Notes: generated by a model from the sequence alone, not told the origin. A stretch of DNA of 64,000 nt from Malacoraja senta (GCA_038087875.1 JAXLNO010001840.1:62001-126000); one strand, 5' to 3'; positions 9,409 to 63,941 are shown, counted from the stretch's first letter. Made by a program: numbers and translations.

Positions 9409-9469
9409 GTTGGAGTTCCCCCACACTCCCGTGTACATCCACAACTAAAAAAACAATTAAGAGCTCGAG

Positions 9470-9850
9470 AGTTTCCGCCCGTGGCTTCACACGTTAACTT
9501 TACAAAATGACAGTGCGAGTAAAACTGTGGCAAAGGACTGGAGGAGTATCTTTGGTATGAAGTTAGTTACGTTTCGTATGTAATTGTCTCTTCACTGCGT
9601 TAAGTACAGTGTTCTGTTAGAAACTGGTCACCCGTCGCGTTACATGATTTCTGCTGAAGCTCTCAAGTTTTGCACTTGGTTCCATTGTCAATATAATCTA
9701 ATATTCTGGTCCCTGAACCCATGAAGAGCCCGGGTAAAACATCCGCACGCATCCTCCGCCCGTCATTGGATTTATTGATCAACCTGTGATATTGATTTCG
9801 CGTTACGCCATTCATCGTGAAAGTCAATCTATGATCTGCCCCGTGCTTTA
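9470..9850 (-). promoter_or_regulatory. Probable NXPE3-like promoter (CpG-rich; CCAAT, TGACG and GC box clustered at 9753-9770)
   Basis: Minus strand tccaatgacgggcggagg, a second GC box near 9475-9481, and local CpG enrichment in non-repeat DNA. Confidence 0.45.
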
Positions 9851-11564
9851 AATATATTTGTCGGAAACACATGAAATAATAGTTCTATGAATCAGCCCTC
9901 CATCGAACAGTTTACGTCCGAGAGTTCAAAGTTATCTGGCGGCATCTCTGGAGAACATCGATAAGATGGAGTTTGTCGTCGAGTCCCTTCTTCACACTGA
10001 TTGTGGTGGTTGGAGAGGTTGTGGTGATGGTTGGTCGGATATACCGTTTCTAGGGGCACCAATATCTACCAAAGATACTAATATCTACCCCTAAAAAAAA
10101 ACCTCCACGCCACACTCAGTCTGTAGAAGGGTCCCGACCAGATTCATCGCCTATCCAAGTTCTCCAGAGATGCTGCCTGCCTGACCCGCTGAGTTACTCT
10201 AGCACTTCGTGTCTTTTTCTTTGTCAACCAGCATCTGTGGTTCCTTGTATCTGCTTTTATCGCGAGGTAGTTTTCTCAGGCACGAACAGTTTATTTGATT
10301 CTAAAACATAATAACATAAACGAGTTCGCGACGGCGTTGAATTACCTGCGATTTGCAATTATTTTCTTTTCATTGATGTCGAGAAGCTTTGACATTATCT
10401 GCAGGAGACAGATTGCTGTTGATATTACCTGGTCACATTTAGCACGAATGAATGCTTCAAACATTGATTGAGAAGTCGTCTCCTCCCAGTTTCGCTGTCC
10501 TCCTTATCTAATGCCACACCCATTCATTCTACACGCACTCCTGTTCCGTGTGCAACAAGTCATCAGACCCTTCATCAGACGAAATAAACTTTGCACTTAT
10601 TTTTATAAAAATTAAAGTATTCAGTAAAAGTTATTTTGTTTGGCCATTGACATCATGAACAGCACGGAGTAAAACTGTGTCTTGAACTTCTATGAGAACA
10701 TTTCTGACTTCCTCCTCAAGAGGTGAAAGGCAAGAACAATAATAAAAAATATATGAAAAGCAGGACATCAGTGTTCACAATGAGAAAAACGAATTAATGG
10801 TGGTGCAAGAAGTGGTCCGAAATGTTCCGTTGCCAAGTCAGGATTAGGGTTATGCAGGTTGGTTCAAACACCTGAAAGTTGTGGGAAAGTAGCTGGTTTG
10901 AAGCTGGTTGTGTGAGCCTTCAGCCTGTCGGAAGCAGTAAGAAGTGGACATGGACGATGACAGATGGCACATACTTGAGATGATTCATATAGATACTTTC
11001 TATGGTGAGATGTGTTGTTCCACTGATAGATCGGGATGAGGTCACCACCCTCTACAGCCTCCTGTGTTGGAATTGCCACACAATACAATTACGCCACCAG
11101 TCAAGGTGCTTTCTCAGTATATTATGCTGAATCTCTTTAAACCAAAGAAAGTTTAAGGTGATCAGAGAGTGAGACAAAATTGACTTTTCAGGTCAAGGAC
11201 TCTTCATTGGAATGGAAAAAAAAGAAACCAATTTTAAAAGTCTCTTTCCCAAAGAACATCTTGAAAGGGGCTGCACAATGGATTGATCACCCTTAAAGAT
11301 GGCCACAATCTCTTTCAAGTGATTGCTGGGATCAGCGCCAGACTTAATGATACAGTTAAAAGATATCTAGTTGTGTAAGAGAGTACAGAGGTTATGCCAT
11401 TTTATGTCAAAATAATAAATTAGTCAAATTCAGATTAGTTAATGGTTATATATATATATACGTTGCAATTCATTTCCTTATTCAGATGAAGTTTACACAG
11501 CAAGCAGGAAATGGCAATGATAGATACACCTATAAATACAACAACAAATGCAAATCAGCAGAAT

Positions 11565-12490
11565 CGAATACAATACGTTTTATTGTCATTGCACAGCAAC
11601 TGTACAACGAAATTTCAGTGCATCTCCTTCAGTTGTATACAATAAAAGACAGGATAAAAAGATTTAAAAGTACAAAAACACATTAACTCTCATATTACCA
11701 GCAAGACCTCAGGAAATATAGCCGCTGCTGTGACTTCTTTACAAGAGTGATGGTGTTCACTGTCCATGTGAGGTCCTGGGAGATGTATGTACCCAGGAAC
11801 TTAAAGCCAGTGACTCTCTCCACCATGTCTCCTTTGATGTAAAGAGGAGCAGGTTCCTCTCTCCTCCTCCTGAAGTCAATAACCAGTTCTTTTGTTTTGG
11901 TTGAGTTGAGTACCAGGTTATTGTTAGTGCACCAGACAGTCAGTTTTTGGACTTCATCTCTGTAGGCAGACTCGTCGTTGTTATTTATCAGCCCCACCAC
12001 AGTCGTGTCATCTGCAAACTTAATGATCCGGTTTGTGCTCTGTGTTGGTGTGCAGTCATGGGTGTATATTGTTTAGAGAATAGGACTCAGCACACAACCT
12101 TGTGGCGCTCCTGTGCTGAGCGGCAGGACTGGGGAGTGATTGGACCCCATCCTGACAGTCAGTGGGCGATCTGTTAATAAGTCCTTGATCCATCTGCATG
12201 TGTTGGCATTTACACCCAGTTTGTCCACCATTCTGCTGGGGATGATGGTATTGAATGCAGAACTAAAATCTACAAACAACATCCTCACATATGAGCTGGG
12301 GCGCTCCAGGTGAGTCAGTGCAGAATGTAGAGCTATGTTGATGGCGTCCTCTGTTGACCTGTTAGCTCTGTATGCAAACTGATGCTGATCCAGGGTGGAT
12401 GGGAGTGAGGATTTAATGTGGGCCAGGACCAGCCTCTCAAAACACTTCATCACAGTTGAAGTAAGAGCAACAGTTGAAGTAAGAGCAACA
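11565..12490 (-). mobile_element. Rex1/Babar-type LINE fragment (RT and 3' tail)
   Basis: [47 protein letters not shown]. Confidence 0.88.
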
Positions 12491-12517
12491 GGATACCAAG
12501 TTAAACTAAGGCAACAC

Positions 12518-12810
12518 AGAGGCACTGTGATAGAGTGGCTGTCTTACAGCATTAGAGACCCGGGTTCGATCCTGACTAGAGTGCTGTCTGGAAGGAGTTT
12601 GTACGTTCTCTCTGTCACCCTGTGGGTTTTCTCTGGGGGCTCCGGTTTCCTCCCAAATACAAAAGACGTGCAGGTTTGTAGGTTAATTTGCTTCTGTAAA
12701 TTGTCCCTAGCTTGAAGGACAGAAATAGTGAATGGACAATTGCTGGTCCGTGTGGACTCAGTGGCCCAAAGTTCCTGTTTCCATACTCTATCTCTAAACT
12801 AAACCAAAAC
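12518..12810 (+). mobile_element. tRNA-derived SINE (HE1-like)
   Basis: B box GGTTCGATCC and CR1-like tail ending ctaaactaaa. Confidence 0.8.
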
Positions 12811-13104
12811 TAATCTCCACTGCCTGCATGTGATCCATATCCTTGTATTCCCTGCATACCCACGAGCCTGTCCAAAACCTTCTTAAGCACCATTATCATG
12901 TCCTCCTCTACCACCACTCCTGGTAGCGCATTCTAGGTATCAAGCTCTCTCTGTGAAAAAAACACTTGACCTGCACATCTCGTGTAAATTTTGCCCTTCG
13001 AAGCTTAACGCTGTGCTCTTTTGAAATGTGTGATAGACATGCAATCCCATTAGGGGCTGTCAACTGTGGTCAATAAAATCCATGGTTAACTACTATGAAA
13101 GACA

Positions 13105-13378
13105 TCAATTACACTTTCTCCCTGTCAAACAGGGATGTAATGCTGAGGTTCTATAAGGCGCCAGTCAAACCACATTTGGAGCATTGTGAGCAATTTTGGG
13201 CACCATATCTGAGGAAGGATGTGCTGGCTCTAGAGAGGGTCCAGAGGAGGTGTACAAGAATGATCCCAGGAATGAATGGGTTAACATATGATGACCATTT
13301 GATGGCAGTGGGCCTGTACTTGCTGGAGTTTAGAAGAATAAAGGGGGGACCTCATTGAATCATACAAAATAGTGAAAG
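13105..13378 (+). mobile_element. CR1 fragment
   Basis: HLEHCEQFWAPYLRKD, LYLLEFRR. Confidence 0.85.
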
Positions 13379-13389
13379 TCTGTTTGCCT

Positions 13390-14745
13390 TTTGAAATTGG
13401 TTTGATTATGTTTTCTCCCACAAAATTGCTTTAAAAAACCTATAGTGAAAATCCTATAATATATAGTGGTATACGAATTTGGAAACAATTAAAAAAGACT
13501 TTAAAATTGGATAATTTATCACTCTCTCCCCATTATAAACAACCCTTTATTCAAACCCTCCATGTTGGATAAAGGCTTTACACAATGGAAAAATTATGGA
13601 ATTAAAAAGATTGGTCATCTTTATAGGAAAGGCACTTTTCTTTCATTTCAGGAGTTACAACAGATTTACGGACTACACTCAAATAACTTTTTCAGATATT
13701 TACAACTTAAAGATTACATTAAATCAAATTACAGAACTAGGGAACCAGAAATCCTTGATGAATGTTTGAATAAACATCCTAATACAGAAAATTTAATATC
13801 TCATATTTATAATACCCTCTTAGATAGTGAGGTCTCGCCGACGGATTTATATAGACACACATGGGAAAATGAATTAGGCCAACCCATAACGAAAGATATT
13901 TGGGACGAAAGTCTACAATATATACATCAATGCTCGTTAAATGCCAGACATGCCTTAATACAATTTAAAGTATTACATAGATTACATTATTCTTAAACAA
14001 AATTAAATAGAATCTTCCCACATATCTCTCCTATTTGTGATAAATGCCAGCATTTAGAGGCTAACTTAACTCATACCTTTGTAAATTGTATAAAAATCAA
14101 AAATTTCTGGAAGGACATTTTCAGAATAATTTCTGAAGTAGTCAATACCCAATTGGATCCCGACTAAAAACTAATAATATTAGGAATGTCAGAACAAAGC
14201 CTAAGACTTACAATAAACCAAAGAAACTTTCTTGATTATAGTATAATAATTGGGAAAAAATTAATATTAAAATTTTGGAAAGGTCCTATAACCCCCACAA
14301 TCAAAATGTGGATTATGGAAATGTCAGAGACCTTACATTTGGAAAGAACTAGACTTGTCTTAATTGACAAATTTGAATTATTTAATAGAATTAGGTCTCT
14401 ATTTATTGATTTTTTGAAAGGGTAAATTGGTTCAGCATGGGAATCTGACTGAAATCCAAGCTCAGGATTAGATGAATAGTTATGCTTTATAACTTACGGA
14501 CCTATCTCCAAAGTTGTATTATTGGTAAATTATTCCATTCTTCTTTATCATGCCTTTTTTTAAATTTCTCACTTTCTATCTATAAAACAAAACTAAATAG
14601 AAGCAGATTTAATATACAATTGATAAAGGAGGACCACTATTATTTTGATAGCTGGATTCCCACCTATTAGCAAAGTAGGATTGATATATAAGAAATGTTT
14701 GTATTATGATATGCACATGCTTCTAATAAAAATATATATATATTT
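13390..14745 (+). mobile_element. Older L1/Tx1-type LINE 3' fragment, related to the full-length L1 at 19876
   Basis: IQFKVLHRLHYS and KKLILKFWK, similar to the ORF2 C-terminus near 25620-26089. AT-rich tail. Confidence 0.88.
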
Positions 14746-14749
14746 TTAA

Positions 14750-15105
14750 ACAAATAGTGAAAGGCTTGGATAGATGTGGATGTGGAGAGGATGTCTCCAA
14801 TGGTGGGAGAGTCTACGACGAGAGGTCATAGTCTCAATATTAAAGGACATTCCTTTAGGAAAGAGATGAGGAGGAATTTATTTTGTCAGAGGATGGTGAT
14901 TCTGTGAAATTATTTGCCACAGAAGGCTGTGGAGTCCGTCAATGGATATTTTTAATTCTTGATTAGTATGCAGGTCAGGGGTTATGGGGAGAAGGCAGGA
15001 GAATTGGGTTAGGAGGGAGAGATAGATCAGCCATGATTGACTGGCGAAGTCGACTTGATGGGCCGAATGTTCTAATGCTGCAGCCATCACTTATGACCTT
15101 ATGAC
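14750..15105 (+). mobile_element. CR1 3' end
   Basis: CR1 3' UTR motifs (ggagaaggcagga, gggccgaatg). Confidence 0.8.
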
Positions 15106-15392
15106 TCAGTTGGCTTCCTCCATGTGCTCCAGTTTTGTCCAATATACCAAAGACGTGCCAGTGAGTTAGTTGGACATTGCAAATTATCCGTCGTGGAGCT
15201 GAATGCAAGGAGAATCCAAGGGAGCTGAGTGCAAGTTGTGAGAGAGAGCTGTGGAACAGTTTGTCGACATTGCGTAGAAAACTAGCATAGAATCAATGGG
15301 CCGAATGACCTTTCCCTCTGTCATGATTGGGTCAGAGATAATATTACTCATTGCCTACCATTGCAAAACAACATCCTTTGTTCTGAACTCAC

Positions 15393-15668
15393 CTTTTCTG
15401 GTCAGGAATGTCTTTCCAATTGCATAGTATGTAAGCCATAGATCCACACAGTCATGTTCTAACAAGCTCTTGAAATAACGGTTCATTTTTTCATTCTTGT
15501 CCCATTTCTCTTTGAAGGGCTCAGCTATTGGATCATGCACCGTCCACTTTAGCTTGTCCTTATCAAAACTAAATGCATAACTTCCATCAAAAGCCAACTT
15601 CAATATCCCTACAGTGGGACTGTGATCGTTCACCTCACAACCAAACTGTCCTTGAACGTAGTGATAAT
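15393..15668 (-). CDS. MHC class I-like gene, alpha2 exon (276 nt, open)
   Basis: Acceptor tttcag|AT, donor G|gtgagt, phase 1-1. YHYVQGQFGCEV...LAFDG...KLKW...KEKWD...HDCVDLWLTYYAIGK keeps the C101-C164 pair, W133, K146 and W147. Confidence 0.93.
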
Positions 15669-15804
15669 CTGAAATAAAAATAAAAATAATTATTTGATTA
15701 ATTGTTATGACTGGGTAATTTCTGAACACCAGGGTCCAAGTCATTTATATATGTCACAACTAGCAAGGGTCACAGCACAGATCCCTGCAGAACTCTACTT
15801 GTCA

Positions 15805-16285: not shown

Positions 16286-16399
16286 ACTACACCCCTCTGT
16301 CCTGGGGATTTATCCACATTTCTCTTCAAGTGATCCAACATCTCCTTCTTGCTTAACTTCAAAGTGTCCCTGCATGTTAGCATTCTTCACATTGATTCT

Positions 16400-17985: not shown

Positions 17986-18062
17986 TGTGGGATTTTCTGT
18001 AATCTGACTTACTAAAGCCACTTTGTGGCCTTTATTAGCCCCTTTAGTTTTAAGCTTTAGAG

Positions 18063-19864
18063 CAGTGGTTCTTAACCTTTTTGGCCCCACGACCCCATCG
18101 GGCATTCTTGATCAGTACCGTGACCTCTGAAACAAAATTTGAAAAAAAACAGCCCGATTTATTAAAACATGTCAGCCAATGCTCAGTCAATGGGATGTCT
18201 GAAATTGCTTCGCAGTCATCAGGCAATCAAAACGAGCACGAATGCTCGACAGGCAGCATCTCATGTCAGTGTCGATCACAAACCTATTGAGTACCTTCGT
18301 TTTCAGAGTTACCATAGTTGAGAATCCACCCTCACAGTGAGAGGTTGAGGGGGACTGGACCAATAGGGTCAGGGCCCTCTTAGAAAGAGCAGGACAGTCC
18401 TTCACTTTCAGCCAAAACGTGGCGAGCTCTTGTTCCATGAAGTCACTCTTGAGTTGCGCATCTTCACAAATTCGGTAAAATTCAACCTTCGCAGTTACAT
18501 CAGTATCACTGATGCCACCGTCTTCAACGGAAAAGGGTCGGATGATCCACTCATCATGAGAGCAGTCGTCCAGTCTGGGGAAGTAACGTTCGATGGCTTC
18601 ACTAATTGCCAGAAGGTGGGTTGAGATCTCCTCATGGAAGTGGCATTCAGCATCAGGCATAGCATCCAGGAGAGTCATCATCTCAGGGAAGATAGTCGAG
18701 TCACCGTCCTGGACTCTTCTCTGGTAAAGGTTCCTCCTGAATGCTGCCACTTTGCCATTGGAAGGTTTCCTTGAAGTGACAGGTTCAAGGAATTCACCTC
18801 GGTGAAGAAGTCAGCCAAGTAAGCAACCTTCATCACGAACAGTTCAACCTGCATCTTTTCATGAAGCTGATTCTCCTTCTCAGTACCCCTTCTCTCCAAG
18901 AACGCTATTTCCTCTCAACGTTGAATCACATGATTGAGAACTTTACCACGCAAAAGCCAGCGCACTTCTGTGTGGAATAACAGAATAGTGAAATCGGCGC
19001 CCATTTCTTCACACATCGCTTTGAAGATTCTTGAGTTTGTTGCACTCTCTCGGATGTGGTTCACAATCTTCACCACATCTGAAAGCACTTCTCGAAGACC
19101 AAGAGGGAGAGTCTTCATCGCTAAAGCATGGCGATGTATCATGCAGTGGGTGAAGGAGACATGGGGAGCGACATCCTTCACGAAGGCTTGGAAACCGGAT
19201 CTGCAACCGACCATGGAAGGTGCCCCAACTGTACACATCCCGACAAGGCATTCCCAGCCTAGCTCATGTTTGATGAGGAAGGCTTCCAGCATTCTGAACA
19301 CATCTTCTCCCCGAGTGGTAGTAGCCAATGGCTCCGAGACAATGGCTCCGAGAACAGGTACTCCTCCTCCTCCGTCATGGCTTTTCCATTGAGGTAACAA
19401 ACGTAGACTAGCAGTTGGGAACATGAGGCAACATCTGTTGACTCGCCCAGTTGCAGTGAATACACTGGACTGCTCGTCACAGCCCTCACTACTTGCAGCA
19501 GAATATCATTACTCCATATCCGAGATTCAACTTTTGACTGTGTCATTCAAAAGGGAAATCTGCCTGAACTTGTTTGACTGCTGTTCCCCCAGCACCAACT
19601 TTGCTGCTTCGAGAAGGCATGGCTTGATAAGCTCTTCACCGATGCTGTGAGGTTTCTTAGTCTGTGCGATTCGATAAGCAATCCGGTATGAAGCCTCCAA
19701 CGCTGCTTCATTTTGATGAGCGCAGTGACCCGTTGAATACATGCGGGAACCCTTGAGTACGGCTTCTTTTCGTTTGAAAGAGTCCACGCTCTTCCCCGCC
19801 AGGTTACTGTGACAAGACTCCAAATGGATCTTCAGTTTGCTGGGCTTCATGCTCTCGTGACTCT
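18063..19864 (-). mobile_element. hAT (Charlie/Buster-type) transposon, degenerate transposase, 3' part
   Basis: TIR CAGTGGTTCTTAACCTTTT at 18063 flanked by CTTTAGAG. Frameshifted ORFs MKPSKLKIHL, LGESTDV, HCMIHRHAL, HTEVRWL, CEGGFS. Confidence 0.92.
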
Positions 19865-22800: not shown

Positions 22801-25800
22801 CGAAAATCTAAAACCAGTGAACTCTTACACACATAATATGGAAAACACAAATATAACAGATGTATGGAGGATTGCAAACCCGACGGGAAGGGATTACTCG
22901 TTTTATTCAATGGTGCATAAAACATATTCACGGATAGACTATTTTCTAGTGGATACAAAATTAATTTCGCAATCTCTGAATCCTAAATATCATATTAATG
23001 CGATCTCAGATCATTCTCCGTTAACTTTTGTTCTAAAACTAGAAGGAATGTCTATGAATAAACCGTTCTGGAGGTTTAACTCACAAATTTTAAAAGACCC
23101 TCAAGGGAGTATCTATCTAAAAAAACAGATGGATCTATTTTTTGAGTTAAATGATACACCAGAGATATCCCCCACGTTATTATGGGAATCCTTCAAAGCA
23201 TTTATAAGAGGAGTCATTATTTCATTTCAAGCTTATCAAAATAAAAAGAATAAGAATGAACAAAGACACTTAGAAGATCAAATAAAACAGTTAGATATAG
23301 ATAATGCTAAAGACCCAACTATGGATAAACATAATAAAATACTACTACTGAAATTTCAGTTAAATAAATTACTGTCAGAGAAAGTTATAACATTATTTCA
23401 AATCACAAAACAAGAACACTTCGAATTCGGGACAAACCCCACAAACTTCTAGCACGACAACTTAAAAAACGGGAAAAAGAGAATGCAATATTAAAGATTA
23501 AATCAGATAGAGGGGAAGTATTAACACTACCCAAGGATATTAATAAAAGATTTGCTCAATTTTACCAGAATCTATACACATCTAAAACGTCAATAGACAA
23601 TAATAAAATCTCAGAATTTTTAGATAATTGTAATCTACCACAATTAGAACGCAGGGAACAAGAGGAACTGGGAGCACAAATTACTTCTAAGGAGATAGAA
23701 GACACAATAAAAACACTAAAAAATGGAAAAACACCAGGACCAGACGGATTCAGTAATGAATTTTATAAATCTTTTTATGATATAGTTACTCCACGATTAC
23801 AAAAAATGTATACATATGCTTTATAAAGAGCAAAACCTACCTGAAACACTAGCGGAATCAACGATCATATTAATACTTAAAAAAGATAAAAATATAGAAG
23901 AACCAGGATCATATAGAGCTATTGCTTTGTTAAATACGGATCAGAAAATAATAGCAAAAACATTAGCCAATAGATTAAGCAAGTATGTTAGTAGACTAAT
24001 ACATGAGGATCAAACAGGATTTATACCTAAGAGACACTCATTTAATAATTTGAGACGTTTGCTTAACATAATGCATTCACATAAATCTTATGACCAAGAG
24101 TTAGCTATCATCTCACTGGACGCAGAAAAAGCGTTTGATCAAGTAGAATGGGACTATATGATCAAAGTATTGCAAAAATTCCAATTGGGAGAAAACTTTA
24201 TTGCATGGATAAAACTACTATATAACAAACCTACGGCTAGAATACTAACTAATAATATATTATCTTCAAAATTCGAATTATCTAGGGGCAACAGACAAGG
24301 ATGTTCACTATCACCGCTGTTATTTGCTTTGGTAATTGAACCCCTTGCTGAAAAAATAAGAACACACTCGAATATTCACGGTTATAACACAAAATATTCA
24401 AACAACAAACTATCCCTATATGCTGATGATGTACTACTGTACATCACAAAACCACAAATTAGTATACCAAATATATTAAACTTAATTGAGGACTTTGGAT
24501 CCTTTTCAGGATATAGAATAAATTGGAACAAAAGTGAAATTATGTCGATTAAACCAAAAGACTCAACACATCTCAGGAAATTCCCTTTTAAAATAGCTAT
24601 GGAAAAATTCAAATATTTAGGAATTGAGATTACTAGAAATTACCATGATATGTTTAAAGCTAATTATAATCCCCTACTTAAGAAATTAAATAATCTGATT
24701 AAATTTTGGAAAACACTTCCGATGTCTTTAATAGGTAGGATAAATGCTATAAAAATGATTTTCTTACCACAAATCCTTTACCTATTTCAATCAATACCTA
24801 TATATCTCCCAAAAAAGTTTTTCAAAAAACTGGACTCAGACATTACAAATTTTATATGGGATTACAAATCCCACAGAATACAAAGAACACACCTTAACAA
24901 ACGAAAAGAGTTGGGGGGTCTAGCGCTCCCTAACTTTATGTATTATAACTGGGCAGTAAATATTAAAAATATGATTCACCTGCTGGACAATTCTGCCCAG
25001 CAGGTGGACTGGATTATAATGGAAAAAGGGGATTGCTCCCCGAATAATATAGGAGCGATTATTCTCTCTCCAATAAATTTGAATAATAAAAATTATAATA
25101 AAAATCCAATTATATATAGCACTATTAGAACATGGAAGCAAATAAAACAGAATCTAAAATTAAGAAACCTATCTCTCTTAATACCAATAGTCAATAACCC
25201 ATCGTTTAAACCTTCAATCATAGATAAAGCATTTATACAATGGGAAAGAATGGGAATTAAAACGCTCGAAGATCTGTATGAATTAGAAAAATTACTATCA
25301 TTCCAACAACTACAACTGAAATATAATTTGAAAAATAATCAATATTTTAAATATATACAAATCTGTGACTATTTGAAAACACACACAAAAGATTATTATA
25401 ATATGCCTTCCGACTTACTAGATGAAGCAATGAAGACAAAGGCGGAATCAGTTAATTTAATATCATACTTATATAATATCATCTTAAATATAGAAATACC
25501 CACAACAGATGGAATTAGAAGAGATTGGGAACAAGATCTAGGTATAAAAATTTCAAAAGAGAGTTGGGATAATCATTTATTACAGGTGCATAAATGCTCG
25601 ATCAACGTACGACATACGCTTATCCAATTTAAAACATTACATAGATTATATTATTCAAAAACCAAACTAAATAAAATCTTTCCTAACGTCTCACCAATCT
25701 GTGATAAATGTATATGTCAAGAAGCTACCATAGCACATTCTTTTGTTTTTTGTACAAAAATCCAAAAATTCTGGTTTGAAATATTTGATATTTTTTCAAA

Positions 25801-26502
25801 ATTAATCAAAATAAAACTGGTACCAAAACCAGAATGGATTATTTTTGGAATATCGGAAGGTATTCCTGAATTAAACGTGTATCAGAAGAATTTACTCAAT
25901 TATGGGCTAATAATGGGAAAAAAGCTTATACTTAAATTCTGGAAAAATGCGCCCACACCAACAATAAAAATGTGGACATCAAATATGTTGGAAACATTAC
26001 ATCTGGAAGAGATGAGATTCCTCCTAGTAGGCAAAGTAGATCAATTTCAAAAGACGTGGTCTACGTTTTTGGACCTATTACAAGCATGAGGTGCAATAGT
26101 AATTTAGAAAAACAAATAAATAAATAAAAGGTATCTGGACCTGGTAATGGGAGGTAAAATAAAAACAGACTTGGTTGGTAGTTCCTTCTCTATGAAGTAT
26201 GGTATAAGAGTTATAATAGAGCGATTGTTCCTTCTTTCTTTCTCTTTTTTTTTCTAGGGTCTATTTTCTAACTTTACTTCCTTCTCTAACCTCTTTTCTA
26301 AGGGGCTTTCTTTTCCCAACACTCTTTTGCACTTCACAACCTTTGCGCACTTTCTCCACTTTTCTTACTTCTTTCTTTTTCTTTCTTAAAGTTTAAAAAA
26401 GTGAAGCGGTACAAAAAATGTATTAATATATACGCGTTGTACATTACTGTAACCTACCGTACTTCTAAAAAATAAAAAAATAAAAAATAAAAAAAAAAAA
26501 AA
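19876..26502 (+). mobile_element. Apparently full-length L1/Tx1-type LINE (5' UTR, ORF1 about 20069-21067, long spacer, ORF2 about 22295-26089, poly-A)
   Basis: Coiled-coil ORF1 with YPARMRI. APE and RT motifs (SRIDYFLV, SLDAEKAFD, RQGCSLSP, LYADD). Poly-A tail. TSD AAACCTTG at 19865-19872 and 26503-26510. ORFs broken by single-base indels and some stops. Confidence 0.95.
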
Positions 26503-29284: not shown

Positions 29285-31248
29285 AGAAACATAGAAAAAT
29301 AGGCACAGGAGCAGGCCATTCGGCCATTCGAGCCAGCACCGCCATTCAATATGATCATGCCTGCATCTAGAATCAGTACCCCATTCCTGCTTTTAGAAAC
29401 ATAGAAACACAGAAAATAGGTGCAGGAGCAAGCCATTCGGCCCTTCGAGCCTGCACCGCCATTCAATATGATCATGGCTGATCATCCAACTCAGTATCCT
29501 GTACCTGCCTTCTCTCCATACCCCCTGATCCCTTTAGCCACAAGGGCCACATCTAACTCCCTCTTAAATATAGCCAATGAACTGGCCTCAACTACATTCT
29601 GTGGCAGAGAATTCCAGAGATTCAGCACTCTCTGTGTAAAAAATGTTTTTCTCATCTCAGTCCTAAAAGATTTCCCCTTTATCCTTAAACTGTGACCCCT
29701 TGTTCTCGACTTCCCCAACATCGGGAACAATCTTCCTGCATCTAGCCTGTCCCTTTTGACCCTTAAGAATTTTGTAAGTTTCTATAAGATCCCCCCTCAA
29801 TCTTCTAAATTCTAGCGAATACAAGCAGAGTGTATCCAGTCTTTCTTCATATGAAAGTCCTGACATCCCAGGAATCAGTCTGGTGAACCTTCTCTGTACT
29901 CCCTCTATGGCAAGAATGTCCTTCCTCAGATTAGGAGACCAAAACTGTAGGCAATACTCCAGGTGTGGTCTCACCAAGACCCTGAACAACTGCAGTAGAA
30001 CCTCCCTGCTCCTATACTCAAATCCTTTTGCTATGAATGTTAACATACCATTCGCTTTCTTCACTGCCTGCTGCACCTGCATGCCTACTTTCAATGACTG
30101 GTGTACCATGACACCCAGGTCTCGTTGCATCTCCCCTTTTCCTAATCGGCCACCATTCAGGTAATAGTCTACTTTCCTGTTTTTGCCACCAAAGTGGATA
30201 ACCACACATTTATCCACATTATACTGCACCTGCCATGCATTTGCCCATTCACCTAGCCTATCCAAGTCACCTTGCAGCCTCCTAGCACCCTCCTCACAGC
30301 TAACACTGCCCCCCAGCTTCGTGTCATCCGCAAACTTGGAGATGTTGCATTCAATTCCCTCGTCCAAATCATTAATATATATTGTAAATAGCTGGGGTCC
30401 CAGCACTGAGCCTTGAGGTACCCCACTAGTCACTGCCTGCCATTCTAAAAAGGACCCGTTTACTCCTACTCTTTGCTTCCTGTCTGCCAGCAAGTTCTCT
30501 ATCCACATCAATACTGAACCCCCAATACCATGTGCTTTAAGTTTGTATACTAATCACTTATGTTGGATCTTGTCGAAAGCCTTCTGAAAGTCCAGATATA
30601 ACACATCCACTGGTTCTGCCTTATCCACTCTACTAGTTACATCCTCGAAAAATTCTATAAGATTCGTCAGACATGATTTACCTTTCATAAATCTATGCTG
30701 ACTTTGTCCAATGATTTCACCATTTTCCTAATGTGCTGCTATCCCATCTTTAATAACTGACTCTAGCAGGTTCCCCACTTCTCTCTCCCTCCCTTTTCAA
30801 AAAGTGTGGTTACATTAGCTACCCTCCAATCCTCAGGAACTACTCCAGAATCTAAAGAGTTTTGAAAAATTATCACTAATGCATCCACTATTTCTGGGGC
30901 TACTTCCTTAAGTACTCTGGGATGCACTCTATCTGGCCCTGGGGATTTATCGGCCTTTAATCCATTCAATTTACCTAACACCACTTCCCGGCTAACCTGG
31001 ATTTCACTCAATTCCTCCATCTCATTTGACCCCCGGTCCCCTGCTCTTTCCGGCAGTTAATTAAGTCTTCCTTAGTGAAGACAGAACCAATGTAGTTATT
31101 CAATTGGTCTGCCATGTCCTTGTTCCACATGATCAATTCACCTGTTTCTGACTGCAAGGGACCTACATTTGTTTTAACTAATCTTTTCCCCCATATCCCT
31201 TGATTCCTTTCGCCTTAAGAGCTAAATCTAACTCTCTCTTGAAAGTAC
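29285..31248 (-). mobile_element. CR1 LINE(s), about 1.9 kb, frameshifted RT
   Basis: ORFs 30763-31020, 29663-30511 and 29491-29730, with repeated CR1 tails at 29285-29480. Confidence 0.93.
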
Positions 31249-32376: not shown

Positions 32377-35300
32377 TGTAGATGAGATATGCATGTGCCT
32401 TTAACATAGTGACCTCATACCTACTAACCACTCCCCATATCACAAGTATATCTACAACCTCCCCACCCACAGATCGCTCTCTAGTTCCTGTGACAGACCA
32501 CGTACAGCTAGTGCTATGTGTAATGCTCCAGTATGAATAAAGATAGTAAAGTAACGACGCCTCGTTATGAAGCCTTTACATGGTGTCACATAACTTACCT
32601 TGCGCCTCCTGTTTATCGGTTTATCATTTAATTTTGTCCCAGTTTTTTGTTTCCCCCGCCCTCCTGTTTCTTTGTCATGGCCTCTTCTGCCCGTAAGCCC
32701 GATGTGCTCGTTTTTGATTGAGACATCGCCCTTCGATGGGACATATTCAAACGTGACTTTGAACACTATTTCACGATCACTCATCCTGACGCCACCCCCG
32801 CTCTCAAAGCCTCCCTGCTTCTCAACTTGGCTGGTCCCGAGGCACTGACTCGCTCCGACTTCTTCGTCTACGCTGCGGGAGAATCAGCTCGGGACCCGGT
32901 ATGTCTGTTGGCTAAGTTTGACGCTATTTGTGACATTCCGACTAATTGCATCTTAGAACGTTTTAAACTGTTCGCTGGGGAGTCTGCTGAGAACTATGTC
33001 ATTGCGCTGCGGCACCTCGGTAGGCGCTGCCGCCTCCAAGCGTGGAACCCCGATGAGATTATCAGGGACCTACTGGTTTACGGTCTCCGTGATGAGAAGC
33101 TCAGGGCCGAACTTCTGCGCAAGCCGGATCTGACTTTGGCCGATGCTATGCACGCTACTCGCTTAGCTGACGCTGTTTCCTCGGCGGCGCCGCCGGCTGA
33201 GCAGGCGATCAACTTTGCCAGCACTCCCAGTCATCTCATGAACACACCCCAGTCGCGACCCCCAGGGTCGCTCGCTGCTCGAGGGGGACGCGCCCCGGGG
33301 TTCGGTGCTGCTACAAGGGGAGGTACCCAGCAAAGGTGCCCTAATTGCAACTTCACAACTCATCAATTCAATGTGTGCCCTGCTTTGGGAAAGACTTGCA
33401 ATGTCTGCAATAAATTGAACCATTTTGCTGCGGCTTGTCGTTCCCGTGGGAAGCCTGTCGCTGCTCGAAGGGGAAATTTAAACAACCTTCTACAAGCTGA
33501 CAACGAGCTCAGCTCCCAGTGCTATTCCGATGAACATTCTGTTTCTACATCTGACTCCTCTCAGGGGGAGACCAACTTGTTTACCGTGTTGGATGCACCT
33601 GCTATGATAACGGATCCTTCTGTGCAAGTCACTGTGAACAACTCGACCTTCACTGCTAAAATCGACACGGGGGCGGTGACCAACGTAATGTCAACATCCC
33701 TTTTCAACCAGATAAGAACTAATGAGCAGATATTTTCTCAGAGCTCAACCTTGCATGCCTACGGTGGGGAGATTCTTACTCCTGTGGGCAAGGCCACGCT
33801 ACACTGTAAGATACTAGAGACCACTCGGCCCCTCACCTTCTATCTCCTCAATCGAAAATGCATTCCCCTGCTGGGGATCCAGGCATGCCAGGAAATGGGA
33901 CTGGTGTACTTCCACCGGGACATCCACCAGGTGCAGACTCTTATGGACCCGCTGGCCGATTATCCCGACCGCTTTGATGATAAGCTAGGCAAACTACCCT
34001 GCAGCTACAAGATTGTAGTGGACCATAAGATCGTTCCTGTGGTCCATGCTCCTCACCGTGTCTCCTTCGCCATGAGGGACAGAGTGGAGGCGACCCTACA
34101 CAGTATGGTACAAATGGGCGTCCTAAAGGCGATCGTCGAGCCCACCAGCTGGGTCTCTTCCATGGTTGTTGCTGCTAAAAAGGACATGAGCGAGATACGC
34201 ATCTGCATCAACCCCAAAGACCTCAACCTGGCCATTCGACGCCCTCACTACCCTATGAGAACGGTGGAAGACGTCGCTGCACAGGTTGGTCCAGCAACGG
34301 TTTTTTCTGTCCTCGATGCCAAAAGCTCCTTCTGGCAGATACCACTGGACGAGCGGTCGTCCATTTTGACAACTTTCGCCACCCCCTACGGAAGGTTTCG
34401 GTTCCTCCGAATGCCATTCGGGATCAACTCTGCCAGCGAGGTATTTCAGCGGACCATGGAGCAGTTGTTTTTAGATCTGCCTTGCGCCATAATTGTTGAC
34501 GACATCCTCGTTTACGGTAAGGACGTTGCCGAACACGATGTCAACCTCCGCCTGGTCCTGGACCGGGCCCGGCAAATCAACTTGAAACTGAACCCCAAGA
34601 AGTGCCGATTCCGCGTCTCGGAGGTCACCTATGTTGGACATGTATTCACCGCTGAGGGGCTAAAGCCAGACCCGCAGAAAACGGCTGCCATCTCAGGGAT
34701 GCCCCCTCCTACCAATGTGGCAGGCCTGCAACGCTTCCTCGGCTTGGTAAACTACCTGGGGAAGTTCATCCCCGACCTCAGCGAGCTCAGCGCTCCCCTG
34801 AGGGACCTGATCAAAAAGGACACGTCCTGGCTTTGGTTACCCAACCATCAGAAGGCATTTGACATTCTTAAGTCTAAGCTGATCAGCACCCCCACGTTCA
34901 AGTTCTTTGACCTGCAGCGTCCCATTGTCCTCACCTGCGACGCCTCTCAGTTCGGACTCGGTGCCGCCTGCCTCCAGGTCCATGACGGCCTGCAGCTGCC
35001 TGTCTCCTTCGCGTCCCGCACCATGACCGCCACCGAACAGCACTACGCGCAGATTGAGAAGGAGCTACTGGCCGTGGTGTTTGCCTGCTCCAAATTCCGG
35101 GACTACATCGTGGGCAACACTTTCACCGTTGAAACTGACCATCAGCCACTTGTCACCATCCTCAACAAATCGATCCATGTGGCCTCATCACGCCTGCAGC
35201 GCATGATGCTGCAGCTCCAGCGCTTCACGTTCACGGTGGTTTATCGTACGGGCAAGGACATGTTCGTGGCCGACACGTTGTCTCGCGCCCCGCTGACGTC

Positions 35301-36378
35301 CACCGCTCGCCACCAATATGAAATGTCTGAGTTATTGGTGCTACGATTGAACATCGTCCCCTCGCAGCAGATGAAGTCCCTGGTTGAACACACTACCAAC
35401 GACCCTGCCCTGCAACAGCTGTCTGCCGTCATCCGGCAGGGCTGGCCTGACCGTCGTTCGGCACTGCCGGCTGGTGCCGTGCCCTACTTCCTGATTCGGG
35501 ACGAGCTCGTACTGCACGACGGCGTGGTGGTGAAGGGTCACAAAGTGGTCGTGCCCGCGGCGCTGCACGACCAATATTTTCAAGTCGCACACCGCGGTCA
35601 CCCTGGGGCCGAAGCCACCCTGTCTCTCGCCAGGAGCCAGTTCTATTGGCCGGATATGGCCAAATACATCCGGGAGAGGGTCTCCTCGTGTTCCATCTGC
35701 AACAGCCTCGCCCCCCATCAGCAGCGTCAGCCGCTTCTACAGCAGCCCGCGCCCGAACTGCCCTGGATGGCGCTTGCCACTGACATTTTCGAGTGGCGGG
35801 GCAAACATTTCCTGGTGCTCGTTGACTCCTACTCCAGCTGGTTTGTGGTCGACCGGCTGCATTCCATGACCTCTTCGGCCGTCATCGACAGGTTGTACCC
35901 TCATTTTGGCACTTTTGGCCCCCCGGCAAGCCTGCAGTCGGACAATGGCAGCCAGTTCACGAGCTCCGAGTTTAAAGCGTTCGCTTCCAGATGGAACTTC
36001 CGCCATTTCACCAGCAGCCCGGAGTACCCGCAAAGCAACGGTTTGGCCGAGCGTGCAGTCCGCAGTGCTAAGCACCTGTTGGAACAGTGAGCCGTGGTCG
36101 CCATGTCACCATTGGGCATGAGCCGTGGTCGCCATGTCACCATTGTATTTGCCTGTCGTTTCGAAGAGGAAAGATGTAGATGAGATATGCATGTGCCTTT
36201 AACATAGTGACCTCATACCTACTAACCACTCCCCATATCACAAGTATATCTACAACCTCCCCACCCACAGATCGCTCTCTAGTTCCTGTGACAGACCACG
36301 TACAGCTAGTGCTATGTGTAATGCTCCAGTATGAATAAAGATAGTAAAGTAACGACGCCTCGTTATGAAGCCTTTACA
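32377..36378 (+). mobile_element. Ty3/Gypsy LTR retrotransposon: 204-bp LTRs (32377-32580, 36175-36378), gag-pol with truncated integrase
   Basis: TG...CA LTRs identical by eye, CTTAC TSD, PBS TGGTGTCA, PPT GAAGAGGAAAGA. ORF 32827-36090 has a CCHC knuckle, DTGA protease, IVDD RT, RNase H, and HHCC plus D-D-E integrase. Confidence 0.97.
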
Positions 36379-38736: not shown

Positions 38737-38996
38737 TTGCTGTTTCGTTCTGCCTCCGCATCCATTCATCGACTTGCCCTTTGATGATTCCATGGAAACC
38801 AGTTCAGAGACCGTATTTGTTACCCAGTAATTCCTGTCAAATGCAGCCGCCATCCATTTCTGTCTTGGAACTGTAATGACCATGTTTTTGTCATAATACT
38901 GTATCTCACAACCATCCAGTTCACCCACGACACTATATTCTGGTAGATGAGTACTCCTGTGGTTCAGGGTGTAGTAATAGATCAGTGTGTGAGGCC
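38737..38996 (-). CDS. MHC class I-like gene, alpha1 exon (260 nt, 1-nt frameshift as assembled)
   Basis: Acceptor tgtctag|GG, donor A|gttagt. Reads GPHTLIYYYTLNHRSTHLPEYSVVGELDGCEIQYYDKNMVITVPRQKWMAAAFDRNYWVTNTVSEL, then after a +1 shift GFHGIIKGQVDEWMRRQNETA, which restores R84 and the N86 glycosylation sequon typical of class I. Confidence 0.9.
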
Positions 38997-41599: not shown

Positions 41600-42510
41600 T
41601 CTGGTGTAGGTACACAAAAATGCTGGAGAAACTCAGTGGGTGCAGCAGCATCTATGGAGCGAAGGAAATAGGTAACGTTTCGGGCCGAAACCTTCCTCAG
41701 ACTGATAGGGGGTGGGGAGAAGAAAGGAAAAAAGGAAAAAGGCGGAGGAGGAGCCCGAGGGCTGGGGGAGGGGAGGAGACAACCAGATGGCTGATGAAGG
41801 GGAGGGGACAGCAAGGGCTAGCAGAATTGGGAGAATTCAATGTTCAAGCCCCCAGGATGTAGACTGCCCAAGCGGAATATGAGGTGCATTTCCTCCAATT
41901 TACGGTGTTGCTCGCTGTGGCCATGGAGGAGACCCAGGACAGAGAGGTCAGATACGGAATGGGAGGGGGAGTTGAAGTGCTGAGCCACCGGGAGTTCAGG
42001 TTGGTTATTGCGGACCGACCGGAGGTGTTCGGCGAAACGATCGCCAAGCCTCCACTTGGTCTCACCGATGTAGATCAGCTGGCATCTAGAGCAGCGAATG
42101 CAATAGATGAGGTTGGAGGAGATGCAGGTGAACCTCTGTCGCACCTGGAACGACTGCTTGGGTCCTTGAATGGAGTAGAGGGGGGAGGTGAAGGGACAAG
42201 TGTTGCATCTCTTGCGGTTGCAAGGGAAAGTACCAGGGGAGGGTTGGTATGGGAGGGAAGGGAAGAATTGACAAGGGAGTTATGGAGGGAGCGGTCTTTG
42301 CGGAAGGCAGACATGGGGGGAGATGGGAAGATGTGGCGAGTGGTGGGGTCACGTTGGAGGTGGCGAAACTGACGGAGGATCACTTGTATGTGACGGCTGG
42401 TGGGGTGAAAGGTGAGGACTAGGGGGACTCTGCCCTTGTTGTGAGTGGGGGGGATGGGGAGAGAGAGCAGTGTTGCGGGGTATGGCAGAGACCCTGGTGC
42501 GAGCCTCATC
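41600..42510 (-). mobile_element. Penelope-like element fragment with hammerhead core at 41677-41700
   Basis: GIY-YIG ORF 41818-42144 (IYCIRCSRCQLIYIGETK), RVPLVLTFHP, and CTGAGGA...GAAAC. Confidence 0.92.
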
Positions 42511-52699: not shown

Positions 52700-54130
52700 T
52701 CCTTTTCTGGCGGAGGTATTCACGAGAATCTTCAATCTGTCTCTATCTCTGGCAACGGTCCCCAAGTGCCTGAAAACAGCCACCATAGTGCCGGTGCCGA
52801 AAAAGTCCAAAGTCACCAACCTGAACGACTACCGCCCGGTTGCCCTAACTCCAATCCCAATGAAGTGCTTCGAAAGGCTGGTCCTCTCCCATATCAAATC
52901 CAGCATCCCTGCCTTACTGGACTCCCATCAATTTGCATACAGGGCAAATAGATCAACAGAGGATGCCATCTCTCTGGCTCTTCACACTGTCCTGACTCAC
53001 ATGGACCGACAGGGCACGTATGTGAGGATGCTCTTCATTGACTATAGCGGTCATCCCCACCAAGCTCACCACCAAACTCCACCAGCTAGGCCTCAGCTCG
53101 CCGATATGCAATTGGATCCTGAACTTTCTGACAGAGCGACCGCAGGCAGTGAGACTGGGCCTGCACCTGTCCTCCACTATCACCCCGAGCACCGGCACAC
53201 CACAGGGCTGTGTACTAAGCCCCATGCTCTACTCCCTCTTCACTCACGACTGTGTCCCTGCATTCGACACCAACACCATCGTGAAGTTTGCAGACGACAC
53301 AACAGTGATTGGGCTGATCACCAACGGTGATGAAACAAAATACAGAGCGGAGGTGCAGAACCTGGCGGACTGGTGCGCTCATAACAACTTGTCACTAAAC
53401 ACCTCCAAGACCAAGGAGCTGATTATTGACTTCAGGAAGTCCCATAATGGAGAATACGCCCCAATCTCCATTTACGGGGACAGTGTGGAGAGAGTGTCCA
53501 GCTTTAAGTTTCTGGGCACACACATCTCAGAGGACCTCACATGGTCCACCAACACCGCTGTGCTGGTCAAGAAGGCACAGCAACGACTGTTCTTCCTGAG
53601 GACATTAAAAAAGACTGGTCTGCCCCAACAGCTGCTGACAACGTTCTACCGCTGCACCACAGAGAGCATATTAACGTATGGCATCTCTGTGTGGTATCTC
53701 AGCTGCACGGAGGCGGAGAGGAGAGCTCGTCAGCGCGTCGTCCACACAGCGCAGAGGATCATTGGGACAGAGCTACCAGCCTTGGAGGGCATCTGCCACA
53801 CATGGTGCCTCAGGAAGGCCGTCAGCATCCATAAGGACTCATCACGCCCTTGTAACGGACTGTTTGAACTACTTCCCTCCGGCAGACGTTACAAGGCCTT
53901 CTACGCCCGAAACTCCAGACTCAGAAACAGCTTTATTCCAAGAGCTATAGTAGCTCTGAACCGACCCTGCTGAGTGCCCCCCCACCCATCCCCCCTGGAC
54001 AGCCTCCCTCGGATGGTCACCTCACTCAGCTTGCTTATTTATTTATTTTACTTTTCTTGTACATCGGTGGAGCTGCATACTAAATCTCGTTGCACTGACG
54101 TGCAATGACAATAAAAGATATTATTATTAG
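52700..54130 (+). mobile_element. Rex1/Babar-type LINE (RT and 3' UTR with ATT tail)
   Basis: ORFs 52766-52951 and 53038-53973 ([29 protein letters not shown]). Confidence 0.93.
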
Positions 54131-54399: not shown

Positions 54400-54720
54400 T
54401 TTAAGGTTAGTTTAGTTACAGCATGGAAACAGGCCCTTCGGCCCACTGAGTCCATGTTGACCATTGATCTCCCATTCACTCTAGTTATTCCACTTTCTCG
54501 TCCACTCTTTACACACTAGGGGCAATTTACATAGGCCAATTAACCTACAAACCTGTATGCCTTTGCGTTGTGGGAGGAAACCGGAGCACCTGGAGGAAAC
54601 CCACTCGGTCACAGTGAAAATGTGCAAACTCCACATAGACAGACCTGAAGTCAGGATTGAACCTGGGTCTCTGGCGCTATGAGGCAGCAACTCTCTACCA
54701 TTGCACCACTGTGCTGTACT
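54400..54720 (-). mobile_element. HE1-like SINE
   Basis: Reverse complement of the SINE consensus. Confidence 0.8.
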
Positions 54721-55489
54721 TCACAAAACCCATTAGCCAGATCAACACACGTAAATTGCAAAGAAAATCAAAGGAGCATTGGCGGCCATGGGTGCCTGTG
54801 TTATATGGAAAATAAATTGTGAGGAATAGGACTGATGAATGAAAGAATGATTGAATGATACTCTATTGTCACATGTACCCAGGGTACCTGGGTATAGTGA
54901 AATGCTTTGTTTTCCATACAACCTCGGTCTATCCTTGACCGGACTTTGCTGGCTTCACCTTGCACTAAACATTATTCCTTTATCATGTGTCTCTACACTG
55001 TAAATGCATTGATTGTAATCATGTATTGTCTTTCTACTGACTGGTTAGTAAGCAACAAAAAGCTTTTCACTGTACCTCGGTACACGTGACAATAAACTAA
55101 ACTGAACCTAGGCATTACAAAAATGTCGTCATGTGTTGGCGCAGACAAAGTTACAAATTACCGAACAGTCCTATCCACTGCCTGTTGCCGCACATGGCAG
55201 CAGACCCCATCCCCACCAGTTCCCCCTTCCCCACAGTACCCCATTTGTTCTCGTCCCCCTCAATGGGACAGCCTCCATGTGCTGAATGCCCTACGTCTAC
55301 AATGTTCTAAGTATAAGATTAGATTAAGCAATGCTCACTGTTGGACTTTGTACCTGCAAACCTTTATTACTTTGTTGGTCTCTTTGAATACAAACATTCT
55401 TGGGTGTTCTTGTCTGTACAAACTAAAATGTGTTGGTTTCTCTGTGACGTTTGAATTCGGGTATCATGCTCACCAATCTTTTTGAACAG

Positions 55490-58100: not shown

Positions 58101-58129
58101 CTCCCTCGGCATGCATACAGTCCATACAA

Positions 58130-58380
58130 TTTCACAGTTGAGGTTAGCGTTGTGTAGCGTTCAAGTGCGTGATAGTTGTTGGGAAGAAGCTATTCTTGAA
58201 ACAGGAGGTCATGGTTTTCAAACACCTATACTTTCCACCCCATGGTGGGAGGTAATGAAAGCGTGGCCAGGGGGATGATGTTGCCTTCCTTTTTGAGGCA
58301 GCGTCTCGTGTGGATCCCTTCGATGGTGTTGAGGTCAGAACCCACGATGAACCGGGCAGTATAACTTCCTGATTATTCAC
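58130..58380 (-). mobile_element. Rex1/Babar 3' fragment
   Basis: CFKNSFFPTTI. Confidence 0.75.
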
Positions 58381-60856: not shown

Positions 60857-60859
60857 TAG

Positions 60860-62050: not shown

Positions 62051-62074
62051 TGAACCTGTCAAACAATGCACTTT

Positions 62075-63450
62075 GTGTAAGAAAGAACTGCAGATGCTGG
62101 CTTAACTCAAAGGTAGACACAAAATGCTGGAGTAACTCAGCAGGCAGGCAGCATCTCTGGAGAGAAGGAATGGGCGACCTATCGGGTCGAGACCCTTCTT
62201 CAGACTGATTTCAGGGGAGTTGACGGGACAAAGATAGAATGTAGTTGAAGACATTAAGACTGGTGGGAGAACTGGGAAGGGGAAGGGGATAGAGGGGGAA
62301 CGCAAGGGCTATTTAAAGTTAGAGAAGTCAATGTTCATACCGCTGGGGTGTAAACTACCCAAGTGAAATATGAGGTACTGTTCCTCCAATTTGCACTGGG
62401 CCTCACTCTGACCATGGAGGAGGCCCAGGACAGAAAGGTCAGATTGTGAATGGGAGGGGAAGTTGAAGTGCTGAGCAACCATGAGATCAGGTAGGTTAAG
62501 ATGGACAGAGCGGAGTAGTTCAGTGAAATGATTGCCGAGCCTGTGCTTGGCCTCACTGATGTAGAGAAGTTGGCTCCTGCAACTGCGGATGCAGTAGATG
62601 AGGTTGGAGGAGGTGCAAGTGAACCTCTGCCTCACCTGGAAAGACTGTTTGGGTCCTTGGATGGAGTCGAGAGGGGAGGGAAAGGGACACGTGTTGCATC
62701 TCCTGCGGTAGCAGGGGAAAGTACCTGGGGAGGGGGTGGTTTGGGTGGAAAAGGACGAGTTGACCAGGGAATTTCGGAGGGAATGGTCTCCACGGAAAGC
62801 AGAAAGAGGTGGAGATGGGAAGATGTGGCCAGTAGTGGGATCCTGTTGGAGGTAGCAAAAAATGATGGAGGATCATATGCTGTGTGACGGCTGATGGGGT
62901 GGAAGGTGAGGACAAGGGGGACTCTGTCCTTGGTACGAATGGGGGGGGGGGTAGGGAGAGCAAGAGCGGAGCATCGAGGAGACCCTAGTGAGTGCCTCAT
63001 CTATAATGGAAGAAGGGAACCCCAGTTTCCTAAAGAATGAGGACATCTCCGATGCCCTGGAAAAGAAAACCTCATCCTGGGCGCAGATGCTGCGTAGACG
63101 GAGGAAGTGGTAGTCGGGATAGAGTCTTTACAGGAAGCAGGGTGGGAAGAAGTGTAGTCCAGATAGCTATGGGAGTCAGTAGGTTTGTAGTAGATGTCGG
63201 TCAATTGTATGTTTCCTGTTATGGAGATGGTGAGATCTAGAAACGGTAGGGAGATGTCGGAGATGGTCCAAGTGAATTGGAGTGCAGGATGGAAATTGGT
63301 GGTGAAGTTGATGAAGTCAGTGAGTTCTGCATGGGTGCAGGAAGTAGCACCAATGCAGTCGTCAATGTAGCGGAGGTAGAGTTCGGGGATCGGGCCAGTG
63401 TACCTCTGGAACAATGATTGTTCGACGTTCCCTACAAAGAGGCAGGCACA
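62075..63450 (-). mobile_element. Penelope-like element (RT fragment, GIY-YIG, terminus)
   Basis: YLRYIDDCIG, YYKPTDSHSYL, RVPLVLTFHP, IYCIRS. Confidence 0.92.
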
Positions 63451-63815
63451 GCCCTTTCCCGCCTCTCCCACATTGTATTCCCATTCTTACAATAACAACT
63501 TGAAATCAAAGATGTTTTTGTTTCAAACCGTGTCGCTCCTGTTTGTTTTACACGAGTTAAAATCAGTTTAAAGCAATATCTGCAGCTCCTTCTTCCACAA
63601 AGGAAACGGGGCATTGTGCAAATCAATGCAGAAATTCCAGTCTGGATTGTACTGAAACAGTGGAGATTAATTCCCTTTTAACGTCCGCATGAACCATGAA
63701 TCAGACTGAATGTGTATTGCGCGCTTTTTCAAAACTCAGTCGCCTCCGGTCACGATTGAGATAAAGCCAAGACGCTTTTAGCCAGTAGCGAATAAAATGA
63801 GAGTCATTAACTTAC

Positions 63816-63867
63816 CTGCTTGAGCCCCTTGTACGCCGAAGAAAATCAACAAGATGAACAGCATCAT
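63816..63867 (-). CDS. MHC class I-like gene, exon 1 (signal peptide MMLFILLIFFGVQGAQA; an in-frame upstream ATG at 63888 would add MREVVRE)
   Basis: Hydrophobic 17-aa leader ending in A-Q-A, followed by a phase-1 donor G|gtaagt at 63815. The joined codon G+GG gives mature G-P-H-T-L of the alpha1 exon. Too short for the ORF track. Confidence 0.85.
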
Positions 63868-63941
63868 TTCACGCACAACCTCTCGCATCAACAGCAGCAA
63901 CTGAGCCAAACTTCACCAACATCAAAGCAGGATCTCATCAT

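Follow-up and report, generated by a model that had tools for sequence, protein, structure and literature searches.

Does a cartilaginous fish carry a class I gene of the major histocompatibility complex (MHC) that has dispensed with its alpha3 domain? The question is raised by a 64,000-nucleotide (nt) stretch of the skate Malacoraja senta (GCA_038087875.1 JAXLNO010001840.1:62001-126000; hereafter the window, with positions counted in the whole stretch), in which leader, alpha1 and alpha2 exons of a class I-like gene are followed by exons of an NXPE3-like gene. A preliminary description of this locus had proposed four alternatives: a functional molecule consisting of alpha1 and alpha2 alone, a 3'-truncated duplicate, a gene whose alpha3 lies past the left edge with NXPE exons nested inside it, or a misassembly. 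Our analysis favours the truncated duplicate, because homology to intact class I genes ends at about position 12497, the distal part of intron 3 is absent and the counterpart of the NXPE side lies on another chromosome in the skate Amblyraja radiata; the alpha1-alpha2-only molecule found no support. The gene in the window is probably a non-functional copy, 3'-truncated and frameshifted, of a class Ib gene with the conventional alpha1-alpha2-alpha3 layout, that is, a pseudogene fragment.

The three class I exons exist as described, all on the minus strand. The leader exon (63816-63888) begins with an ATG at 63888-63886, encodes MREVVREMMLFILLIFFGVQGAQA plus one base (24 codons and 1 base) and ends at a G/gtaagt donor (slash at the exon boundary); in tblastn searches it is matched by residues 1-24 of skate class I proteins. 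The alpha1 exon (38737-38996, 260 nt) lies between a ctag/GG acceptor (upstream sequence ...gtgtctag) and a CAA/gttagt donor, and the alpha2 exon (15393-15668, 276 nt, intact) follows a ...tttcag acceptor and ends at a phase-1 donor, AAG/gtgagt, for which the window offers no partner exon. Introns 1 and 2 measure 24.8 and 23.1 kb. Alpha2 matches the Pfam family MHC_I (PF00129) at 4.3e-13, over the cut-off, and keeps both cysteines of the intradomain disulfide (FGCEV and HDCVD, equivalent to Cys101-Cys164); alpha1 alone gave no Pfam match and aligns with fish class I chains at 7e-9. For both domains the best structure match in the PDB is 9ch4_A (2.3e-34 for alpha2 and 3.4e-23 for alpha1, at approximately 63-65% identity), with ordinary class I, MR1 and ZAG chains far weaker.

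Alpha1 carries a frameshift. The exon has 260 nt in the window versus 261 nt in A. radiata, Leucoraja erinacea and Rhinoraja longicauda, and a MAFFT alignment of the four skate loci places a 1-nt deletion within a run of three A's: at 38803-38804 (minus strand) the window has AA instead of AAA, reading GAAC (...CTGAAC...) where the other three skates read GAAAC (...CTGAAAC/A...). The tblastn high-scoring segment pairs are split over two frames at this site, with protein homology running in one frame to approximately 38804 (...NYWVTNTVSE) and in the other from 38803 to 38738 (TGFHGIIKGQVDEWMRRQNETA). The latter stretch holds an N-glycosylation sequon conserved among relatives, and the sequon, NET at the end of alpha1, is present in the shifted frame only. 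Once the frame jump is permitted, alpha1 is 92% identical to the A. radiata protein P0154. As assembled, alpha1 is left in phase 0 and alpha2 is entered out of frame, and translation from the leader ATG would end at a stop 12 codons into alpha2. The earlier statement that the three exons are compatible in phase and make up a coherent ectodomain therefore fails, as no uninterrupted frame crosses the exons.

Other DNA contigs, from organisms A and B and approximately 99% identical to alpha2, carry a 2-nt deletion at 15517-15518. Contigs with this deletion account for depths of 227/227 in X2, 1321/5938 in X1 and 4.5/4.5 in X3, which suggests further frameshifted copies or alleles of the alpha2 exon in relatives or paralogues.

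The absence of an alpha3 exon, reported in the preliminary description for the left end of the locus, holds across the whole window. Tblastn with skate proteins 88-92% identical to the encoded exons recovered leader, alpha1 and alpha2 and left residues 204-341, which contain alpha3, the transmembrane (TM) segment and the tail, unmatched anywhere in the 64 kb. Hidden Markov models (HMMs) of alpha3 and of the TM/tail region, built on 16 family members, were also applied without filters to all stop-to-stop segments of at least 15 aa in six frames. The best E values in the window were 1.3 for alpha3 and 0.59 for TM/tail, and the same models, applied to the Amblyraja locus as a positive control, detected both regions (7.4e-54 and 7.2e-20, respectively).

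All known relatives that we examined retain the missing domain. A full-database phmmer search with alpha2 returned one protein at 92% identity and two at 70-71%, in a cluster named 'class I histocompatibility antigen, F10 alpha chain-like' (Leucoraja erinacea, Amblyraja radiata, Pristiophorus japonicus). The lineage is also present in Rhinoraja, Pristis, Mobula, Hemitrygon, Heptranchias, Heterodontus, Stegostoma, Cetorhinus, Scyliorhinus and Mustelus, each protein being 319-352 aa long with a C1-set alpha3 domain, and alpha3 was found in 16/16 relatives examined (P0154, P0156, P0189 and 13 other shark and ray proteins). The closest are the skate F10 alpha chain-like genes of A. radiata (XP_032898133.1, P0154), L. 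erinacea (LOC129716032, P0156; XP_055486429.1, P0157) and R. longicauda (P0189). At the protein level their leader, alpha1 and alpha2 share 88-92% identity with those of the window, exon sizes and splice sites agree, and approximately 18 kb of intronic DNA is colinear at 8-11% mismatches. These genes continue over 31-78 kb into alpha3, a C-terminal TM segment and then a tail (for example RRDYQNIPPNQNVPC) with a Y-Q-N/T-I (YQNI-type) sorting motif, whereas the copy in the window has the alpha1 deletion and loses homology in intron 3. In L. erinacea, several isoforms of LOC129716032 (P0152, P0153, P0155, P0201) fuse class I to a downstream GPR139-like receptor, P0201 combining MHC_I and 7tm_1 without a C1-set domain; these isoforms are probably read-through model artefacts.

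Where the window departs from the intact genes can be located to within a few bases. The Amblyraja locus (L001: leader at 10001, alpha1 at 41880-42143, alpha2 at 53460-53738, alpha3 at 74155-74436, TM at approximately 80.7 kb and tail at 87.7 kb), the Leucoraja locus (L002: alpha2 at 54471-54749, alpha3 from 64491 onward) and the Rhinoraja locus (L005: alpha2 at 29625-29903, alpha3 from 32723 onward) are all intact. The window aligns with L001 in 27 colinear blocks totalling 18.4 kb at 8.2% mismatches, between 64000 and about 12497, and likewise with L002 and L005; identity is at the level of orthologues and the locus structure is colinear with that of the other skates, with distances grouping the loci as ((Amblyraja, Leucoraja), window), Rhinoraja. 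In blastn comparisons the proximal part of intron 3 (12497-15392, minus strand) is colinear to last matching bases at L001 65560, L002 56274 and L005 31245, apart from a 1.4-kb lineage-specific insertion at 13377-14751. The class I match then stops abruptly at approximately 12497, some 1.5-3 kb into intron 3. Beyond this point L001 and L002 stay colinear with each other (92-97% identity) through to alpha3, and in Rhinoraja alpha3 lies about 1.5 kb further on, so that 1.5-8.6 kb of distal intron 3 precedes alpha3 in the intact loci. None of this distal sequence was found in the 12.5 kb to the left of the breakpoint (word size 9, E 1e-4), where dispersed repeats alone gave matches.

In the four-way alignment, identity ends at ...TTAGTTTAAC(T/C)TGG, after which the window enters a reverse-transcriptase frame. 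This frame belongs to a long interspersed nuclear element (LINE) relic at 11700-12497 (minus strand; Pfam RVT_1 4.7e-14), which begins exactly where class I homology ends. The relic has lost both of its ends and shares only 66% identity with its nearest counterpart among the sequences compared, at 52839-53601, and therefore represents an old element; on the same grounds we reject the idea that a newly inserted LINE caused the rearrangement. A similarity of 7 nt at the breakpoint may be coincidental. A perfect 18-nt tandem duplication (2.2 copies, Tandem Repeats Finder) lies at the edge of the relic, at 12452-12491, and may be a junction scar. Between the relic and the NXPE3-like gene, the spacer at 9445-11699 is mostly single-copy, with a short interspersed nuclear element (SINE)-like repeat at approximately 10100-10250; it is unmatched in intron 3 of the intact class I loci and is covered at ordinary depth by DNA contigs of a related sample. 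The public runs that match the window are DNA-like, their short contigs spanning introns as well as exons.

The NXPE3-like exons, placed by the preliminary description some 6 kb from alpha2, begin 5.9 kb downstream of it on the same strand and form an in-phase open reading frame (ORF) of their own. Exon 1 (9307-9408, minus strand) encodes a start codon and signal anchor (MDKQATK...LALALMFLNLRHIK), ends at an AAG/gtgagt donor and parallels exon 1 of the Leucoraja NXPE3-like protein P0165. Exon 2 (1923-2710, minus strand), in phase with it, encodes a neurexophilin-like domain (PF06312, 1.2e-35) and has as its closest protein the A. radiata 'NXPE family member 3-like' P0164 (89% identity). From 5948 to 299 the window is colinear with an A. 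radiata locus (L003) at 54.15 Mb of CM021380.1, at 4-6% mismatches. The intact Amblyraja class I gene lies at 0.43-0.52 Mb of CM021389.1, and the window thus joins regions that are on separate chromosome records in Amblyraja.

Exons for the C-terminal, PC-esterase-like part of NXPE were found neither in window positions 1-1922 nor in the 10 kb downstream in the Amblyraja L003 locus, and presumably lie beyond the window edge. At L003 10001-10702, the annotated 233-aa 'NXPE family member 3-like' protein consists of exon 2 only, running from an internal Met through the donor into the intron; this model is probably incomplete. NXPE intron 1 contains two GC-rich arrays with a 20-nt period (6950-7140 and 8830-9210, approximately 9-11 copies, several frames open on both strands), the end of the nearer one lying approximately 100 bp downstream of the exon 1 donor.

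Directly before NXPE exon 1, a pyrimidine tract and an AG at 9446-9445 form a candidate acceptor. Joining the phase-1 donor of alpha2 at 15393 to position 9444 would add VVDVHGSVGELQHGQTSYKNKH, 22 codons that end at a stop, lack a hydrophobic stretch and do not follow the NXPE frame. An in-frame class I-NXPE chimera is ruled out for the window by this reading frame.

A duplication or rearrangement with its breakpoint in intron 3 at about 12497 would yield a 3'-truncated copy of this kind, the cut intron being joined to sequence leading into the same-strand NXPE3-like gene; the alpha3, TM and cytoplasmic exons would then be missing because the gene was cut in intron 3 and joined to NXPE-side sequence. 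With the frame of alpha1 shifted as well, we infer that no protein is made from the copy. Several observations weigh against a dead fragment. All four splice sites are good, and alpha2 retains a consensus donor. The frameshift is known from the assembly alone; in a k-mer test on the 61 nt centred on the site, 1/4 sampled words was present in X1 and X2, approximately 10% of words being non-diagnostic for AA versus AAA, and a nearby single-nucleotide polymorphism would explain the rest; we did not count this result as support. The window reaches 15.4 kb past alpha2 and intron 3 of Amblyraja measures 20.4 kb, so distance alone leaves room for a remote alpha3, and the breakpoint sits beside repeats prone to mis-joining (a SINE-like element at 12510-12803 and the reverse-transcriptase relic). 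Furthermore, the ratio of nonsynonymous to synonymous divergence (dN/dS, Nei-Gojobori) of alpha1 and alpha2 is 0.23-0.36 against the three orthologues, within the range of the intact genes among themselves (0.20-0.56), and the window sequence thus shows no long history of relaxed constraint. At synonymous divergences (dS) of 0.09 and 0.15 to Amblyraja and Leucoraja and 0.21 to Rhinoraja, the low dN/dS implies constraint during most of the copy's separate history, and suggests that the copy lost its function, or was derived from a working gene, only recently. Relative to Amblyraja, mismatches amount to 8.2% in the class I half and 5.1% in the NXPE half, a difference that may reflect an older paralogue or regional rate differences.

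These points bear differently on the other readings of the locus. Were the class I and NXPE loci wrongly joined near 12.5 kb, with the 1-nt deletion perhaps a consensus error, the real gene would be intact and an ordinary class Ib gene, in keeping with the normal purifying selection on its exons. The high copy number of the SINE-like element, which forms one side of the junction with the relic, the separate Amblyraja chromosome records of the two halves and the failure of short public contigs to bridge 12394-12904 all fit such an assembly artefact. Yet the window contains no N runs, the relic is old and low-copy and so a poor substrate for a mis-join, and the missing base falls in a run of three A's only; we consider an artefact unlikely and infer that the junction is biological. 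A complete but very long gene, in which intron 3 received an NXPE-carrying block and the alpha3, TM and tail exons follow past the left edge, would accord with the length of introns 1 and 2, with the 20.4-kb intron 3 of Amblyraja, with the retained phase-1 donor and with the limited sequence downstream of alpha2 in the window. This reading has to contend with the distal intron 3, which is common to Amblyraja, Leucoraja and Rhinoraja (with alpha3 as little as approximately 1.5 kb past the last match) and absent from the remaining 12.5 kb. In addition, an intronic gene on the same strand with strong splice sites would capture the alpha2 donor, alpha3 could be found only past a whole further gene, since NXPE itself runs off the left edge, and the alpha1 frameshift would persist. 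We therefore regard the long gene as quite improbable.

To a functional alpha3-less product we give almost no credence. It could take the form of a secreted alpha1-alpha2 platform with a short tail from the NXPE exon 1 region, or of a chimeric class I-NXPE transcript under control of the class I promoter, and the good alpha2 donor, the polypyrimidine tract with its AG at 9446-9445 and the apparent constraint on the exons are what speak for it. As assembled, however, alpha1 is frameshifted, and the sole in-line acceptor leads through 22 codons to a stop without a membrane anchor; a leader followed by a signal anchor would put the NXPE domain in the cytosol, all relatives retain alpha3, and no protein combining MHC_I and Neurexophilin occurs among the database relatives, of 365-1160 aa or shorter. 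It is also very doubtful that leader-alpha1-alpha2 and NXPE3-like form a real recurrent unit in this skate genome, perhaps as one transcript, giving a secreted platform-only protein or chimeric or regulatory class I-NXPE transcripts. The platform-only protein is conditional on the 1-nt deletion being an assembly error or being absent from sister copies; chimeric or regulatory transcripts, if true, would mean that a class I promoter drives NXPE.

The truncated, frameshifted copy of a class Ib gene thus remains our preferred reading, and its value for MHC evolution is modest: it would record the loss or fragmentation, in a skate, of a copy of a conserved, low-copy and possibly CD1-like class Ib gene, with a breakpoint placed to within a few bases. 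The locus would not be the first alpha3-less class I molecule of cartilaginous fish but a broken copy of an otherwise conventional lineage, and a tempting false lead is removed. For annotation, the locus should be flagged as a pseudogene, and no class I-NXPE read-through model should be built.

The introns of the class I fragment hold further mobile elements. Intron 2 contains, at 32827-36090 (plus strand), an uninterrupted 1087-aa Ty3/Gypsy-type pol ORF with reverse-transcriptase, RNase H, and integrase zinc-binding and core domains, which may be a young long terminal repeat retrotransposon. An open 757-aa LINE ORF2-type reverse transcriptase lies in the same intron at 23816-26089 (plus strand; RVT_1 1.6e-41), a related copy of which sits in Amblyraja intron 3 (L001 54198-57679). 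At 18187-19850 (minus strand), three adjacent ORFs of 107-187 aa resemble pieces of hAT/GTF2IRD2-type transposase-derived genes, with no Pfam match at 1e-3.

As an object the fragment is of an ordinary kind, a class I pseudogene fragment; the lineage from which it derives is of current interest. PDB 9ch4 chain A ('Ig-like domain-containing protein', 268 aa) is a solved member of this elasmobranch class Ib lineage: the Amblyraja protein P0154 aligns with it over 266 residues, alpha3 included (8.6e-118), and 9ch4 has a normal alpha3 that the copy in the window lacks. A literature search for a paper on 9ch4 returned unrelated matches only. Two reviews (PMC10751288; PMC12562908) refer, as unpublished work or personal communication, to CD1-like class Ib genes that sharks and rays carry in single or low copy, named UFA and UGA and with an unpublished crystal structure. 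The lineage of the window and 9ch4 may correspond to one of these CD1-like candidates, UFA or UGA.

An alpha1-alpha2 platform without alpha3 is also what ULBP/RAET1 and EPCR/PROCR present, and ULBP2 and ULBP3 are among the weak PDB matches of alpha2. Those are intact genes, in which an exon for a glycosylphosphatidylinositol or TM anchor follows alpha2 and orthologues share the same architecture, whereas the window has a broken alpha1 frame, no anchor exon and no hydrophobic segment after the nearest acceptor, and its orthologues all have alpha3. There is likewise a resemblance to the class I pseudogenes and fragments left by birth-and-death evolution, such as HLA-H, HLA-J, HLA-K and HLA-L and the truncated class I fragments of mammalian MHCs. 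Like these, the copy in the window is partial, frameshifted and without 3' exons. Unlike the mammalian MHC fragments, it adjoins an NXPE3-like gene whose counterpart is on another chromosome record in Amblyraja, and the class I fragment may therefore sit away from the original position of the gene.

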